NCBI RefSeq assembly: GCF_964204865.1
Contig: NC_135258.1
Coordinates: forward strand, 9,424,001 to 9,488,000
Source of the DNA: Styela clava
Taxonomy: Eukaryota
Reading direction: 5' to 3'
DNA length: 64,000 bases
Position numbers and translations under genes: made by a program. This document shows positions 11,408 to 56,192 of the stretch, one piece after another (the first letter of the stretch is position 1; each line of letters opens with the position of its first letter). The notes beneath the pieces are model-generated. The model was not told the origin of the DNA and searched no databases. It worked only from the letters and a program-made list of their open reading frames with translations.

Positions 11408-14400
11408 AAAAGTGGTGAGATAGGTCGTCTAAACACTAAAGTCTTTGCAAACATTGTTTTTGATTGTTGAATTTAAATTTCCCATTTTATTGCACCGGTC
11501 TTCTACTGCATCATGACCAGAATTTTCTGTTCTTGCAGATGGTTTTAACTCATTACGAACACTGTTTTTCCTTTCACCAAAATTTATACGTTTTAGTTAC
11601 AATTCGGCGCCCAACTGCGAATGCATTCAGCATGTGTAAAACAAAACGAAAATTGGCGACTCGGAAAATAAGTATACGCTAGATGGAGAGGAAGAGTTGA
11701 GATATTGAGGGTGGTGAAGCTTGATTATGAACATAAGAACTAGCCGGCAAAATTCCTAGAAGTTGCCTTTTCGTGGAGTTTCAATTTGAATATTTAGACA
11801 CACTGGTGCTGGCACTGAAAATGCCTTAATTTGACAGCTTATCTAACTCACTTGTGTCTATGATGTGTTTGTCTAACTATAATCGGACCAATAGGAATTG
11901 TAATCAGTAGTACAATGGTGTGTACCATAAGGAGATGCTTAAATTTGCATTATATTATGATCCCTCGCTCATTATCTCTTATATCAGGAACTTCCTCTTC
12001 AGCCATCTTGCTATTTCCCGTTTGCCAAGGCGCGGGTGTCCTATTACAACGTTAAAGATTGATTCCAACAAAACATATGACAGTAATTTGATCCCAGAAT
12101 ATTGAGCAGGCTGCTATCACTGTTGCATTCAGAAGGTCCACTGTATACACAACATAATACTAAAATATTACACAGTGAGTTATATTCAGAATCCAAACTA
12201 CCACCGCAATTCTTCAAGCCTTACTATATATAAGTGCCTCGTATACTTGTGTAAAATTTATGTATAATATATATTCGGAAATGAGAACAGCCGGTCATAT
12301 GAAAAATTTTTGAGTATTCGCTTTTTTAACATGACAACATTTTGCCAAGTCGCTTGCTAATTTGGTTTTGATGTGATGTTCCTCATGTATGCACATAACA
12401 CAACTCCACAAACACCCACTGCTATTCGCGTTACCCTATTTCCTAAGTAAGTATTGACTATCGCTCTTTAGCGTTTCCAATAGGCGGGTATGGACATCTG
12501 TACCTCATTACAAAGGAAGCAACTTTCCAAACGAAAACGCTAATCGATTGATTTCTTAGTAATTTATGTCCAGTAAACTCTCCAACATAGCGGTATTTAA
12601 CCCCTCCATGATCGAAAGAGATTATTGCTGTATCCCAGATATTAAAGTATATTCTTTTCACGTCGAGGCTACTTTGCACTCAAATTGTTTGTTTGTTTTT
12701 GTTGTTATTGATTGTTTTATTCGCACTCGTCATTATTATTGCTGTGTTTGACAAGTTGTTTCACACGTTTTGGGCTCTCAGGAATATTGTCGGACTTTCG
12801 TCCGCAGTTGTTCAATCGTGTGTTGTTATGAATATTATTATCATTGCCACCCTTTATGGTGGTATTTAAGTCAATATGATGCGTGGGGTTTTGGGGGTAC
12901 TAATATATATATAAAGCCTAAGTCTTATCATTTATACATAGCTGCTATGGCACGCTGCTAATGGAACTAACTGCTTAGGTGATTGAGAGTAACATCATTT
13001 TGTATGAAAAAGTTAAATGGTCTTTGCACAGTTTATAAAGCATATTTAATATTGTTTCTTGATTATGCACAAAGCTGATGTAAGAAAACTGTATTTGCTG
13101 CTTTTCCTGCATTATTGTACAGTATAAATATATTCAGAAAGATTTCGATGCTTAGACAATCCCAGAGTCCTATTATCAAAACGTACTATATTTAATACAG
13201 CACTATTTAAATATACCCTATACCGTCTTTATATAATCACTATATTTTTGCTTTGATATATATGGTTACACTACAGCGCTTACCAGTCTTCGCAGCTGTT
13301 CACTGCCAATGTGGTGTCGTCAAAGCATGGCCTCTCACCTTTGATAAAACGACTTGCCAGGTTTCGTAGTTTATAGATTGCGTTGATGTTTGGCGTTATT
13401 GTGTATCCGTCGCCAGTTCACGTGCAGTTCCTTTCGTCATTCGGCGCGTAGATTTGTATATAGTATTTTTTTGTTTAATATTGTGTTTTATGTTTACCAA
13501 TTTTTACTTTGTTTTAAATTAATCTGAATGGATAACCAACCGCTCCAATTTGAGGGCCTAAAAAGGCATGATTGCGACAAAATTCCTTGCTGCTATGACG
13601 GACGTTGTGTTCGATCAAAATTCTTTCCTTTTTCTTGTGCATTTGTACGCAATTCATGTCATTTTCCCATTGTATATATTACTTCACTGAGCAACCATAG
13701 GCCGACACCAATTGCAATATAGATAGACAATCATTATTTGTTAGGTTGTTTACATGCCGTTTAATGTTGTAATCATGGTTTGTTTTGATTATTATGAATA
13801 TTGCTAATATCATTTATTGGCAACTGGTATACTCACTTCAAGAAATTCTTCAACTGATCCTATTTTCTGCCTATATGTATCTTTAATCAATGTAATAAAT
13901 TATGATGTATGATTTCAATGCGTTGCAATACACTTGTATCAAGGTAAAGGCAGTCATGAATTCAGGGGGTTAGGGCGAACCCGTTCTTAGAATGCCGGAT
14001 AATTAGCGAACTCGTTTTTGTTTTTGGAAATGAGGGAACATGCTGTTGCTGAGCTCGAAGCAAATAGAACCCATCACTGGGTAGAGGCTTATGTTATGAG
14101 TGATACCCAATTCTACCCGATAGGCCTATATATATATATATATATATATTTAATAAGCGTGACTACTAAATATTTCATACGCAAAGCAAGATACAAAAAA
14201 AATAACTTAATATTCTTGCCAGTTGCCATAGTTCTGAAATATCTTAATTTCTCGATGGATAAAATAGGAGATACGCATAACAAAATAGAGAAGCGTCACT
14301 CATACAGATGTTTTAAGCGTTCTTCTCTTAGTTTTAGTTTACACACAGAAAAAAATTAACAAGGACGGAAATAAACCAATTTTGATATAAAAATTTTTCC

Positions 14401-14813
14401 ACGAATATATATTTAAAATTTCCTATAATAAAATATTTCAAATCTTACTCACAGCTAAGAAATAAAAAAGATAAACTTGTTTAGGCTACATTATAAGAAA
14501 AACACAGATTGCAAAAAGAGTGACAATAAAACTTTCTTAAAAGACTTCTTTTTTGTTATCCAACAATTTGATTACGTGATTATTATATCATAGCAATTGC
14601 TGAGTGTTTTTTTCTGTGTTTTTGTTCAATATTCTTCATATCATTTATATCTAGAGTTTTCCTTTTCCGATAGCGATACCGTTCTTATCTTAACTGTCAC
14701 GGTGAAGATAGTGAATTTAGGAGTTTCTATTATGGATATGCTTGCTAAATAATAGTAATTATTTAGGTAAGATAACCGATGATGTTCCTTTGTTTTTGGT
14801 GTAAGACTTGAGG

Positions 14814-14934
14814 GCCACGTCGACTTTTTTCCCCTAAATTTAAACTTTCGAAATCGACGCCAAACTCCGACATGCCTGCGGCTATTTTTGAAACATATAT
14901 TTACGCAGGGGAAGCGGCGACTGAACGCCACGTG
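14814..14934 (+). promoter_or_regulatory. Putative promoter of the Cys-rich RDEL gene with two GCCACGT (UPRE/G-box-like) cores
   Basis: GCCACGTCG at 14814-14822 and GCCACGTGA at 14927-14935 lie in a locally CpG-rich stretch 65-185 bp upstream of ATG 15000. Confidence 0.3.
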
Positions 14935-14999
14935 AAAATATATTCACGAGAAGTTAGTATAAGGTAAATCGAGTTAGTATCTAGGAGGTCTTGAGAAAG

Positions 15000-17900
15000 A
15001 TGTGGCAACCAATCGGAATACTCATGTTCCTCTGTTCATCAGGAGTGGTGTTGGCCCAAGATATGTCGAGCGATGCCATTCTGGTAAGTGCAATTCATCA
15101 ATATCCCTTAGTTCCTCAAGTAACTAAGGATTTCTGGAATAAGAAAAACCCTTTTTGCTTTGTTTTCTATAATCCTTCCAATATCAAAACAACAAATTCG
15201 ATGTAAATCTTGGGAGGAAATATTACTCTGTGTATATATATATATACAATTTACAGAGTAATATTTCCTCCCAAGATTTACATATATATCTATATATATA
15301 ACAATATGAAAAATAGAAATGAAAAACGTACATTCCCATTCCTTGTAATTTGATCAGGTGAAAATCAGCGAGGTAAATGAAAGGAAAGGGGACTTAGTTC
15401 CATGGTATTACGGTGCGCTCTATTGTGGTGAATATTTTTAAGATGCATCCAGCCATTTACCTCCATTTAATCAGTAGTCACTTTAAAAGATTTTGCACTT
15501 ATTTGATTGGAAGAAGGAACGATTCTGAATAACTATTCTATATTTAAAAGAATCTGGATAGGATCAGAAACCGAGACCATTGCTTAAATGCTGTAGAAAT
15601 CTCCAACTAATGCATTACTGAACTTTGTTGTATACAGAAAACGGCGTATTGTATGTGCAAATGCTGTGCAAAAGATAAAAGTAGTTGTGTTCGGCTCAGC
15701 TCGAGTGCAAACTACGAATGCGGTGAAAGCATGTGCAATGAAAATACATGTATTGTGTACGATAAAGCAAGGTGCAAATCGTTTTGCTTCTGCAAGTAAG
15801 TTGAATTGGCATGATGTTTAGTCACTATATCCTTGACAAGATTGTTCAGTCCACAATGGTAAATAAACGAACATGGGTTTTGATATACTGCGATATGTAA
15901 ATGTACAATGAAAGATTACATATTTATTCTACATAACGTTTTACTAAATATATCTATATTTGGTACTCCTGAAGTATGCGCACCAAGATGTCGCATAACC
16001 TGAACCCTAACCTGGTACACAACCTGAGTTCAGGTTGTGCGCCATCTTGGCGCGCATACTTCAGGAATCAGGAGGTCCCTATATTTATAGTCAGGTTAAC
16101 TGTATTTATATAGTCTTCAGCTCTTTTGTTCAATACTCTAATATTTGTTGATAATAATTTTATTCTTGGACTAATTAAAATATAGATCGGAACGGAAGGT
16201 TACTGGAAACGGCTCTCATTGGGTTGTTTATTATAGATTAAATAATAACAACTGACAATCACATTAGTGTATCACTAAAAAATCTTACAAGCACGGTATG
16301 TTACCCAGCTACTCATTTTAGGGGGTGAGGAGGTGTTTCTAAATTTAGGGGTGATAGATATCAGTTATTAGTGACTTATAAAAAGTATTATTAGTATTTT
16401 TTTGGGGGAGTTACACATAATTCGTTTAATTGTGGTAAAACTATGGTTACTGTGAATGTGTGCTAAATTTTTTTAGGATGGTAATGTTAATATTTCCGCC
16501 ATTACAGTTTCAAATTGAATTATTTGAATATCTGTTTGCATAAACTTATTTCGTTTGCACAGTAAATGCAAATCAGTACTTGAAAAAGACGATCCGCGAT
16601 GTGCAACAAGATTTCCACGTCCAGCAAATTGCGAATGCAAGGAAAAAATTGATTGTAAAAAACACAAAAAAAACCCGGAAAAACTTGATAAAATACTCAA
16701 AAACAAAGACGACCCAGATTCTGAATGTGCCATTCCTTGCTACTGCAAGTGAGTATTCATAGACCATATTATTTTGTTCTCTGTTAAAATATGCATAAGT
16801 AAGGTTTAAAAATATCCTAGAATTCCATAATGGTAGGCAACATAATACATATATATATATAAACAGATGAACTGCATAGACTTACATAGTTTATGGTATT
16901 TCATACAGAAATTGTAAAGCCACATTACCTCCTGAAAATCTTAGAATATGTTTGGAAACGGAGGCACCTGATTCACATTGCAAATGTGAAACCATAAAAT
17001 GTCCCGGACCTGGAGTTATAAAGAACTTGAATAAGGTATTGAAAATTTTATTCGTATAGTATAGTAGATGAGATTAAACAGCCATGGAAATATGATTATC
17101 TGCTGCTTACGATGACGAAAAAACTGGGGGAAAACTTTATTTATGAATTTTAATATGATAATCAACAGTAGCGTACGCCGGTTTTCGTTGAGGGGGTCAC
17201 TAAAAACTTGAAATTTTACGATACTAATACGGTGCCATATTTTTGTACGTTTATAATTTATCCAACGGAAAAGATTTATTGTGACGTTATATTCGATTTT
17301 ATTAAAAGTCATGATGACGTCATAAATAATTTTGAAAAAAGTTGCATAAACTATAAAGCAAGTATATTCGGTAATAACTTGTATTAAAAACACGTTAAAA
17401 CGTCCAACACTCCGGTAAAACATGGTATAAGAAAATGTTTAAATACTTGTTTCTATTCACAATGGCATTGACCATGGTCATCTGCCGACATCATAAATCT
17501 TGGGATTTAATTTTTTGGTATCGGAACGAAAGAAAATAATTTGTTTTTGATAATGTTACGCACTCGTGATGTTCATTGCTTGATCTTGATAGATTCGGCA
17601 AGTGAGAAAGAAAAGGGAAGAAGAAAAAGACGATAGTTTTAATTTTTCAGATGAAATAGATCTCATTTTAGATCCAGTAGAGTCCAAAGCTATGAAATGT
17701 CGGATGAAATGCCAATGCAGGTATGTACCAACAACGTGATATATAATACAAAGAAACACCACACATACACATACAAGTATATGTTGATAGCAAAAAGGGG
17801 TACAAGGAGAAGACGACGTAGAGTAAACGATTGGGGCTCACGTTTTGAAAAATGCACATTCTTCTGAGTATGATAAAATCCTATATTACCGAAACACATT

Positions 17901-19086
17901 TCAAACGGCTTCCTCCACCACCAAGTCCATGCATCTGGAAACAACCAACTAGCCTAGTAATCCTCCATATGGGCTGAAAACCAGACGGGAGGCCGTGGTT
18001 CGTGATATGACCATGTCGTATTATCGACTTTCCTCTCCCATCCTAATAATCTCTTCTCTATTTTTTCTGAACTGGGATGCTACATTTGCAAATAAACCGA
18101 GACAGATAGTTTTTCAGCATAACGTGAGTCAAAGACCACAAAGTTTGTAAAACAATGATAGCTGTATTCTTGACACATTTGCCATATTCTATTTGTCTTT
18201 CCAACCTGAAATGTTATTTTTCTTATAGTATATGCGCTGATGCACACGACAACGTACAAGAAACGTGTGAAAGGTTACTGCCTAAACCTCCAATTGATTG
18301 TCCTGAATGCGATCCAGATAAAGTTAACTGTCGCGAGAATACAATTGACGAGCAATGTCGAGTTTATTGTTTTTGCAAGTAAGTTTGCTATCCATTTTGT
18401 CCTTTTTTACTGGGAGTAACGATATATATCGAAAAAAATTCTGTTCATTGACGATAAGCAAACCAAGTCAGCTAAAGTTACATTCTGGTAAACGGGCAGA
18501 ATGATTCACATTCAAAGAAACAAACGTAATGGTGATTTATCTTCCATTGAATATATATTAGTCGAATATTTTCAAAGAATAATGCATTATGACTATGTTA
18601 GCATCGCAGGTTCAAAGGTCACACACCTCGGATGAAAACCTGAACATTGTTCATTGCGTGCACATTACCATATAGTCATATACTTTTATAGGATAAGATT
18701 TGATGTACCGAACGGCTAAATATCCTATATATTGTGCAATTGAAATGTGTGAAATTGGTTCGGGGATTAGTCTCTAACTCTTCAAAAAAAAAAAATGCGA
18801 ATCAAGCTTCAGAGTAAAATTTTCGCGTACTTATAAAATCACTAACGTTTTTACTTATTTCAGAAAATGCAAGGACGATTCTAGGATCCCGTTCAATTAT
18901 AAGAAATCATGCATCGACGTAGTTAATAAGCAGATAGGTTGTCTCTGCGAAGGAAAGGGAGACGATTGTGGCATAATAGAAAAAATGTCTGAGAGAGGGA
19001 CAGAAAGCTTCAAAACGACTAAGGATAAAAAAAGAGCTAAAAAAGGGAAACTTAAAAAGAAAAAGCAGGACAGAGATGAATTATAG
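15000..19086 (+). CDS. Uncharacterised secretory-pathway cysteine-rich repeat protein with C-terminal RDEL, 7 exons, 351 aa
   Basis: Exons 15000-15083, 15638-15795, 16563-16748, 16909-17035, 17593-17720, 18229-18378, 18864-19086 are all GT-AG and phase-compatible (1056 nt, no internal stop). Signal peptide MWQPIGILMFLCSSGVVLA/Q; 40 Cys in the mature chain; ends KKGKLKKKKQDRDEL*. The exon 5 acceptor (cttgatag) is the least certain junction. Confidence 0.85.
15201..15283. repeat. Perfect 31-bp inverted repeat (hairpin) with a TA-rich 21-nt loop
   Basis: atgtaaatcttgggaggaaatattactctgt (15201-15231) is the exact reverse complement of 15253-15283. Confidence 0.9.
15962..16078. mobile_element. 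Palindromic MITE, family A, copy 2
   Basis: Same arms as 9658-9770. 8-bp TSD CTATATTT at 15954-15961 and 16079-16086. The spacer contains aaccctaacc. Confidence 0.85.
17887..18041 (+). repeat. Dispersed repeat, possibly a SINE fragment
   Basis: Shares ttcctccaccaYcaagtcc..gcatctg.aa...aa..aact.gc and a cttcctc/ctttcctc end with 28250-28380. A reverse-oriented remnant may lie at ~31135-31210. Confidence 0.5.
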
Positions 19087-21344
19087 TCATTTTTGTTTTG
19101 AATTATTTAGTCAATAATTAGTCGAAATACCGATTATTGCTACACACTTGATATGCCGGATTACATTGAAATATTTATTGTAAATCTTTGCAAAAATCCT
19201 ACACGCTTTTCACAAATTATACAAGTATTATTAAATTAGTCTAGGGAATATTTTGACGGATTGTAGTTATTATGAATGCACTCAAGTCTGCACTAGTGAC
19301 AATATAAAATACCTCTGTGTGAAAGTTATTTTTGTGGAGTAAGAAGTGTTGGCGGACTTCGAATATGTATTGCCAGCAAAATTTTAAATTGCATTGGTTT
19401 TGTAACCTTTTGTACTCACTATATTAAACGGGACTTTGAAATTATAGTTTTTGTGATAAATGGAATATCTAAGTTAGTTGTTGTTGAAGAAGTACTAACA
19501 GTACCATGAATGCGAGGAACCAAAACTCGATAGAATCGACTAGATATGGGCTGGCCTTTCATGGTAGATAGGCCTACCAATTCATACCTTGTGTATTAGC
19601 AAAGTTGGAAAATCCGACACGTCGTAATTTTCACTTACGTTGCCAGGGATTCACATATACCGAACAGGGTCACACTGCATATGCTAACAATTAATCTTTT
19701 CCTACTCGATAGTAATAAATTTCTGTCTATTCGTATGAACAAGGACCATAATTCAAGCACGTAGAAAACGTAGCAGCGCAAGTAAAATGAAAGAACGCAC
19801 ATACAAAAAGATGTCCTAATTGTACCTACAAAAGAATGCAATAGCCAACCTACTAAAATCGAAGTAGGACTGGCATCTCAAAGCTCACCTGTACCGTGAC
19901 CACCCGCGTCTCAGTGCACGAAGGCGAAAATTTCAGCAGAGAATTGCAAAATTTGTCAGAAGTTTCGGAGGGGTAATAAATATTGGTATATCGGAGTTGC
20001 GCCGCATTTTCCCATCCACAAAAAAATATATGTATGCCGATTTTTAGAGTCCTGGTTTTAGAAATGACATTTAAGCTAAGCTCTAAGTTTGCGTAGTTGC
20101 ACGATAATGTACCAGAACGAGAGTTATACAATTACAAATTTACCTTCTTCCTACTTGTGAGCTAACAATCACAAATGGTGATCTCTTCAGGTATAACAAC
20201 ATCCCGAGACAAAATTTTACGTTTTTCTTTAATTAATATCTTTAAATAATGAACTAGAACAAAAAATTCAACAAGATTTCAATTCGATATTTTTTACAAT
20301 AAGTACAATACTACACAGTAGCATTCAACATGATGGGTGTAATGGAAGTATATCCAACAAGCAAAAAGTCATTATATCTTAAGCCCACGTCCGACCTAAG
20401 TCATCTAAATATATTTCACTGACATGCTATTTTAAACTCTTCATGAAGCACAAAGCATTTTTTAGAGTCACGGCTAATGAAAATTCATATTCAACAACAG
20501 TTATTAAATTGAATTATTTTCTTGGAATATTTGAACGCAAACGCACAAGTAAAACATTGATAAAAAGAAATTGTATAGCCTTAGCACATGATGATAACGC
20601 AAAACAAGAAAGCGATAGTGAGAAAGCTTTGAGAAAAACGAATTTACAAATTAAATTCATTCTATTTTCAGCCAAGGAAAAAGGGGTAAAATTCAGTTCC
20701 AATTGGTTAATATTCCACTGAAATGCTGAACATACTGAACCAATTGAAATGGAATTTTATTGATTAAAAATTTCAAATGCCGAAAAATCCATGCCGCCAA
20801 TACTAGAGTAAAAAACAGAAAATTCAAATTAAATTGCTAATACAGGAAAAGCAAAGAATGAAATACCATGCTTAATTGAATAGACAAAATTGAAAAAAAC
20901 AAAAAAACAGTCAGAATTGAATGCTGAACTGCTGAATTGAATCTACAAATCTAAAAAATCAAAGAAATTGGGAATACAGAAAAACAAACCAATTCATTGG
21001 CCAAAATAGGGTCACAGGAGAAAACATTTTATTTTTCAATACAAAAAGTATAATTTAAATCAAAAGGCATCAATACTAAATAATGCTGTCTTTCATTAAT
21101 ATATATATTAAATACCGTATCATCATTTGATCCTAATTGATAGAAGAGAACATGCAGAGCAATAATATTCTAAAGGCAGCAGCAGGTTATACTTTTGAGA
21201 GAAGAATTGCACAAAAAAAAAAAGTACAGAAGAAGTGAAAATAATGAGATAAAAAACAAGGATGAAAAAGAGCGAGTTATGGGATTACAACCAGAGGCGA
21301 TAGCTGGGGTTCATCTCTGTGATATTTTGTTTACTACTAGTTTC

Positions 21345-23317: not shown

Positions 23318-56192
<32,875 letters not shown>

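Follow-up and report, generated by a model that had tools for sequence, protein, structure and literature searches.

A predicted endoplasmic reticulum resident with five eight-cysteine modules and a C-terminal RDEL in the ascidian Styela clava

What kind of protein carries forty cysteines in regular groups behind a predicted signal peptide, ends in RDEL and matches no recognised family? This question is raised by LOC120326848, a gene on the plus strand of a 64,000-nucleotide stretch of the Styela clava genome (assembly GCF_964204865.1, contig NC_135258.1, positions 9,424,001 to 9,488,000), which we call the window and whose positions we use below. The gene occupies 15000-19086 in seven exons, and a preliminary description of this DNA had proposed a 351-amino-acid product from them. 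We joined the exons locally and checked the frame, and found that the spliced sum of 1056 nt comprises 351 codons plus a stop. The internal borders of all seven exons are canonical, with AG before and GT after the exon, as in GT-AG splicing. The spliced product was identical, residue for residue, to RefSeq XP_039249139.2 (P0003), "uncharacterized protein LOC120326848 [Styela clava]", which confirms the proposed product and, since RefSeq carries the same seven-exon product under that label, also indicates that the gene model is already public rather than hidden. The earlier version, XP_039249139.1 (P0001), is likewise 351 amino acids long and differs from the window product by three conservative substitutions (V/I, E/D, K/N), none of them at a cysteine. 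Our answer to the question, to which we assign a probability of about 0.55 as a whole, is that LOC120326848 is a real, single-copy, taxonomically restricted gene whose soluble product would reside in the lumen of the endoplasmic reticulum (ER), would consist of disulfide-bonded modules, would be retrieved by the KDEL receptor and would act as a scaffold, the modules having arisen by duplication.

The most conspicuous property of the product is the arrangement of its cysteines. The chain contains 41, one of which (Cys12) lies within the signal peptide, while the remaining 40 form five groups of eight, as had been described beforehand. Modules 2-5 (residues 74-112, 136-174, 221-262 and 271-313) each fit the pattern C-x3-C-x-C-x2-C-x(10-13)-C-x(9-10)-C-x(1-2)-C-x(4-6)-C and open with CKSFCFCNKC, CAIPCYCKNC, CRMKCQCSIC and CRVYCFCKKC, respectively. 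Module 1 (residues 33-66) is a variant that opens with CMCKCC and has the spacing C-x-C-x-CC-x6-C-x10-C-x4-C-x4-C. The modules are 34-43 residues long and are joined by linkers of 7, 23, 46 and 8 residues. When the mature chain was shuffled 100,000 times with its composition kept, at least one full module appeared in 29 shuffles and four C-x3-C-x-C-x2-C motifs in none; the regularity of the modules is far above chance. The residue count and pattern match thus reproduced the five groups, the spacing rule and the variant module of the preliminary description, and its account of a chain rich in Lys, Asp and Glu was also correct (K 14.8%, D 8.8%, E 7.7%, beside C 11.6%). Only three His occur in the entire chain. 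The mature chain has a mass of ~37.7 kDa, a net charge of +11 and a calculated pI of 8.4.

The two ends of the chain bear on where such a protein would be found. Proteins with a cleavable signal peptide are translocated into the ER, where the lumen is oxidising and contains PDI and Ero1. The KDEL receptor binds extreme C-terminal [KRH]DEL in the cis-Golgi, and COPI vesicles then carry the cargo back to the ER; among the natural forms of this signal is RDEL, found in ERp44 and HSP47. A hydropathy scan of the Styela product found a single 19-residue window with a Kyte-Doolittle mean above 1.0, located at the N-terminus (residues 1-28), and the same scan found no second hydrophobic segment in the chain. 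The h-region of the signal peptide reads IGILMFLCSSGVVLA, and V-L-A occupies positions -3 to -1 ahead of Q-D at the likely cleavage site, so that the layout is predicted from hydropathy to be that of a classical signal peptide. At the other end, the chain closes with Q-D-R-D-E-L before a TAG stop; RDEL fits the PROSITE ER-target rule [KRHQSA]-[DENQ]-E-L and is also present in XP_039249139.2. Arithmetic from the observed residue frequencies puts a chance [KRH]DEL ending at this composition below about 1 in 10,000 chains, and because this frequency is low and a signal peptide accompanies the motif, a coincidental RDEL is unlikely. The signal peptide and terminal RDEL that had been noted earlier therefore both hold at the level of sequence, and together with the single hydrophobic segment they argue strongly for retention of the protein in the ER.

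The region between modules 3 and 4 is a 46-residue linker (residues 175-220), which we refer to as the hinge and which contains 10 basic and 10 acidic residues. It carries R-K-K-R (residues 190-193, 17605-17616), matching the furin-type R-x-[KR]-R rule, and, 8 residues from RKKR, the sole N-x-S/T sequon of the chain, NFS (residue 202, 17641-17649). The last 38 residues form a tail (18970-19083) with 15 Lys/Arg and a net charge of +8. These features suggest another possible fate for the product, namely that it is a precursor or is released conditionally: a convertase would cut at RKKR, and perhaps at other dibasic sites, so that modules 1-3, lacking RDEL, would be secreted, for instance to serve as peptides of defence or of the matrix, and the C-terminal half alone would be retrieved. 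The position of R-K-K-R in an exposed hinge between the two module blocks is consistent with such processing, as are the additional dibasic pairs in linker 2 and in the tail, and fast evolution with orphan status would be more typical of secreted immune or reproductive proteins than of ER housekeeping. However, the trans-Golgi is the site of furin action, and proteins with RDEL are sent back from the cis-Golgi; moreover, a lone R-x-K-R may occur by chance in a chain with 20% Lys+Arg. We consider release by processing unlikely, and we return below to the retained protein as the preferred reading.

We then asked in what state the cysteines would be. Each module holds eight of them, at ~20% of its residues, beside Pro, aromatic and aliphatic residues, and His is almost absent from the chain; for these reasons we favour four disulfides per module. 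Structure prediction by AlphaFold2 (AF2) was run without an alignment. Exon 2, encoding module 1 and three further cysteines, gave a mean predicted local distance difference test (pLDDT) score of 44.9, and the whole protein gave a mean pLDDT of 37.2; neither model is interpretable. Only in the hinge did AF2 reach some confidence, showing two helices with pLDDT 50-70. The eight-cysteine unit is possibly a fold without a known relative.

A different state of the same cysteines has to be weighed here. Ascidians are known for metal accumulation, and vanabins are rich in both Lys and Cys, as is the present chain. The modules might accordingly be metal-thiolate clusters holding Zn, Cu, Fe or V in the manner of metallothioneins and CXC domains, and the protein a store or buffer of metal in the ER lumen. 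The preliminary description had remarked that C-x3-C-x-C-x2-C is shared with metallothioneins and CRC/tesmin CXC clusters, and the literature supports this: the CXC/CRC consensus, CXCX4CX3YCXCX6CX3CXCX2C (PMC10058331), closes with this motif, and CxxxCxCxxC strings are reported in plant metallothionein papers. The resemblance ends there, however. The nine-cysteine CXC pattern is matched at its last four cysteines only, the preceding five and the conserved Tyr of the Tesmin/TSO1 CXC domain (PF03638; LIN54 and plant CPP proteins) are absent, and the four further cysteines that follow in each module are foreign to CXC domains. No metallothionein, CXC/TCR or vanabin Pfam model matched at E<=10, and PF03638 matched neither the whole protein nor the exons. 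CXC proteins are nuclear, bind Zn and DNA and have no signal peptide, whereas the Styela protein is predicted to be in another compartment. Compared with metallothioneins and vanabins, with which it shares Cys-richness (and, with vanabins, Lys-richness), the protein is much larger, carries secretory signals and is built of regular eight-cysteine modules with hydrophobic and Pro residues, a composition typical of disulfide domains. An oxidising, PDI-containing lumen and a chain with hardly any His also speak against thiolate-bound metal, and we regard metal-thiolate clusters as improbable.

Is there any relative from which the nature of the modules could be read? For the full-length database searches we used the two RefSeq versions of the protein as queries, and for the profile searches we used the Cys4-Cys8 halves of modules 2-5, that is, four rows of a five-cysteine half-module, run with HMMER against 1.84 billion representative proteins. 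The profile retrieved one true match, the 351-amino-acid protein P0001 itself, with four matched stretches (E 4.8e-45). A second match, P0002, was rejected as a tandem-repeat artefact with an unrelated Cys pattern. Pfam hmmscan with the whole protein gave 0 families at E<=10, where HMMER filters drop most matches above E ~0.1 and a very weak likeness may escape; EGF-like, laminin-EGF, furin-like, TNFR, granulin, WAP and other disulfide-rich domains were all without a match. DUF6085, which appeared in the exon-wise Pfam search at E 0.064, was set aside as a chance match below the cut-off. Among PDB sequences, phmmer with the whole protein found nothing significant (best E 1.4, a proteasome subunit), and the half-module profile aligned over 15-19 residues with variable lymphocyte receptors, cereal inhibitors and alpha-galactosidase (E 0.03-5), matches that we attribute to chance. 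In the 5.8-billion-cluster collection, the full-length query found no relative, with only the protein itself among 943 candidates at E<=1; exon 3 as query gave no candidate there, a weak negative since the length window was 34-107 amino acids. ESM Atlas returned no usable match for exon 3 or for residues 29-316. Annotated proteomes of stolidobranch ascidians are scarce, and the full profile scan covered the five-cysteine half-module, so diverged orthologues may exist in unannotated genomes.

The 377-Mb genome of the species itself was searched in the same way. Exon 3 matched this locus alone (next match E 2.2), and the half-module profile matched four exons of this locus alone (next match E 0.69). 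On present evidence, the gene therefore appears to be single-copy, with no paralogue or orthologue detectable in the data searched. These results agree with the earlier statement that no recognised family is present, and a search for a confident full-length match to a characterised family returned only the uncharacterized RefSeq self-match. The preliminary description had further proposed a lineage-specific ER-lumenal family. The extensive negative searches support the lineage restriction, while the word family does not stand, since there is one single-copy gene in one species. In the literature, we found no paper naming LOC120326848 or its accession and none on RDEL, cysteine-rich proteins and ascidians in combination; the broader literature on ER, KDEL and eight-cysteine proteins gave nothing relevant.

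A genome-wide search at the DNA level for the pattern "C-x3-C-x-C plus phase-2 donor" found the 4 sites of this gene and 13 elsewhere. The latter were rejected as paralogues: 8 of the 13 belong to one dispersed repeat, four fetched copies of which encode an unrelated first exon. This dispersed unit is an observation in its own right. Its sites include C2:5182397, C3:13488951, C8:9287987 and C1:12318118, and the four fetched copies share ~860 bp at 88-89% identity. The unit contains an open frame, ...SNSPSEGTGMFCFSICFC, with a GTAAGT donor at its end. The unit, whose encoded first exon ends in MFCFSICFC, is a multi-copy first exon or a transposon-borne gene, in either case unrelated to LOC120326848.

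We next consider how the modules are distributed over the exons. Exon 1 (15000-15083) begins with an ATG that has A at -3 and is the earliest ATG of its open frame; its first 20 codons (15000-15059) specify the signal peptide (residues 1-20) and the rest specify the opening 8 residues of the mature chain, and it ends in phase 0. Exon 2 (15638-15795) encodes the whole of variant module 1 (15650-15751), the 7-residue linker and Cys 1-3 of module 2, and is followed by a phase-2 intron right after C-x-C. Exon 3 (16563-16748) continues with Cys 4-8 of module 2, the 23-residue Lys-rich linker and Cys 1-3 of module 3, and ends in a phase-2 intron at the same position of the motif. Exon 4 (16909-17035) holds Cys 4-8 of module 3 and the beginning of the hinge, ending in phase 0. 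Exon 5 (17593-17720) completes the charged hinge and adds Cys 1-3 of module 4; it ends in a phase-2 intron and is not extendable upstream because an in-frame TAG immediately precedes its acceptor. Exon 6 (18229-18378) encodes Cys 4-8 of module 4, the 8-residue linker and Cys 1-3 of module 5, again ending in a phase-2 intron, and exon 7 (18864-19086) encodes Cys 4-8 of module 5, the basic tail, RDEL (19072-19083) and the TAG stop (19084-19086). All these exons lie on the plus strand.

This arrangement suggests how the protein may have grown. In modules 2-5, the codon directly following Cys3 is split by a phase-2 intron, at AA/N or AG/N, and an additional phase-0 intron lies within the long hinge. 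As the phase-2 position after Cys3 is common to modules 2-5, the duplicated unit would be "Cys4-8 + linker + Cys1-3" together with its intron. The Cys4-Cys8 halves of modules 2-5 are mutually only 26-27% identical in alignment, and no direct repeat at the DNA level joins the exons, which indicates that the tandem duplications are old. The modules would thus go back to old tandem duplications of a unit made up of an exon and its phase-2 intron, of which only the Cys framework was kept. Of the evidence gathered here, the retention of the Cys positions despite such divergence speaks most clearly for purifying selection on that framework.

Two introns contain further elements. In intron 2, a palindromic element of ~108 bp (15955-16080) has 39-nt arms that are 92% complementary. 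It is highly repeated genome-wide: there were 1791 first-look candidates, and the 40 scored copies were 96-99% identical and lay on many chromosomes. It looks like a young family of miniature inverted-repeat transposable elements (MITEs). In intron 1, at 15201-15283, the perfectly complementary 31-nt arms of an inverted repeat enclose a 21-nt AT-rich loop. This repeat is genome-unique, a search of both strands returning nothing but the element itself. Rfam has no family that matches within 14000-20000, and the intron 1 repeat may represent either a local palindrome or a hairpin RNA.

These data also bear on the possibility that the locus is not a functional gene at all but is mispredicted, unexpressed or decaying. 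The model is a computed one, and the protein collections and the species' own genome yielded no orthologue or paralogue that could show conservation. Against this, seven exons join in frame at canonical sites, with a signal peptide and RDEL at opposite ends; all 40 cysteines (40/40) are kept across modules otherwise diverged to ~27% identity; two assembly versions yield the same 351-amino-acid model with 3 conservative changes; and the high-copy MITE is inserted in intron 2, not in an exon. We consider a non-functional locus very unlikely.

The explanation we favour for LOC120326848 can be set out as follows. The signal peptide would take the chain into the ER and be cleaved after V-L-A. Each module would be oxidised in the ER lumen to a small four-disulfide knot, and modules 1-3 and 4-5 would be set apart by the charged, probably helical hinge with its one N-glycosylation sequon. 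Escapees that reach the cis-Golgi would be bound at RDEL by the KDEL receptor and be returned to the ER by COPI vesicles. Within the lumen, the protein would bind or scaffold other molecules without being an enzyme: rigid disulfide modules would present Lys/Asp/Glu-rich surfaces which, along with the poly-Lys tail, might be offered to client proteins or to a ligand, either anionic or a metal. Such a binding or scaffold role is the one we prefer, and it is a guess; metal sequestration, redox buffering and chaperoning, which had been suggested for the product, are guesses from the sequence too. A narrower version of the role, in which the protein is an ascidian-specific store or buffer in the ER lumen for a metal or an anionic ligand, held by thiolates or by the Lys-rich surfaces and tail of a new eight-cysteine fold, seems to us quite improbable.

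Several points weigh against the favoured explanation. The signal peptide is predicted from hydropathy. The four disulfides are read from Cys parity, composition and compartment, and the structural models were of low confidence (pLDDT 37 and 45). Expression and splice junctions come from the computed RefSeq model. The weakness of the proposed role, a guess as stated, counts here as well. Finally, a fast-evolving orphan with RDEL would be atypical, as housekeeping ER residents are usually conserved, and the product could be stored or conditionally released.

If ER residence is true, the protein would be an unusual case among the deeply conserved soluble ER proteins, being a fast-evolving, single-species, non-enzymatic resident with an eight-cysteine module that the databases do not recognise. 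It would offer a new small disulfide scaffold and show cleanly how modules multiply when an exon is duplicated with its phase-2 intron, and it may be connected with the unusual biology of metals or of the tunic in ascidians. Should it prove to store a metal or an anionic ligand, it would give a first molecular entry point to the way in which tunicates handle metals early in the secretory pathway. The importance of the Styela protein hinges on its expression, localisation and structure.

Downstream of the gene and on the opposite strand, an open frame at 27179-27514 (minus strand) gave a near-threshold match to Pfam PKK (polo kinase kinase), with E 6.4e-05 and 23.5 bits against a cut-off of 25. 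This match suggests an exon of an SLK/STK10-like kinase gene.

Finally, we compared the protein with known systems. Tandem modules of 35-45 residues with 4-8 cysteines and introns of fixed phase are also found in laminin-type EGF domains, the cysteine-rich domains (CRDs) of TNFR and LRRNT caps, but the Cys spacing of the Styela modules differs from each of these, and none matched in Pfam. The C6-x-C7-x5-C8 part weakly matches variable lymphocyte receptors of lampreys in their N-terminal region, which has the form C-x-C-x(n)-C (E 0.03-5, 15 residues, not significant). A closer likeness concerns location rather than sequence. Soluble ER residents that are Cys-rich or contain Cys and end in KDEL-type tetrapeptides include CRELD2 (REEL), MANF (RTDL) and ERp44 (RDEL). 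Like them, the Styela protein has a predicted signal peptide, a KDEL-type terminal tetrapeptide and no membrane anchor, and its cysteines are predicted to be disulfide-bonded or redox-active in the ER lumen. Unlike them, it has no EGF/furin-like, saposin-like or thioredoxin Pfam match, bears no sequence relation to any of the three and has no detectable orthologues, and the tail before its RDEL is basic, which is unusual when compared with the acidic one of ER residents of this type. CRELD2, MANF and ERp44 thus appear to be its closest functional analogues, forming a functional class and not a homology family. On present evidence, the Styela protein belongs with the many cysteine-rich proteins that are restricted to particular invertebrate lineages, among which its RDEL end sets it apart.

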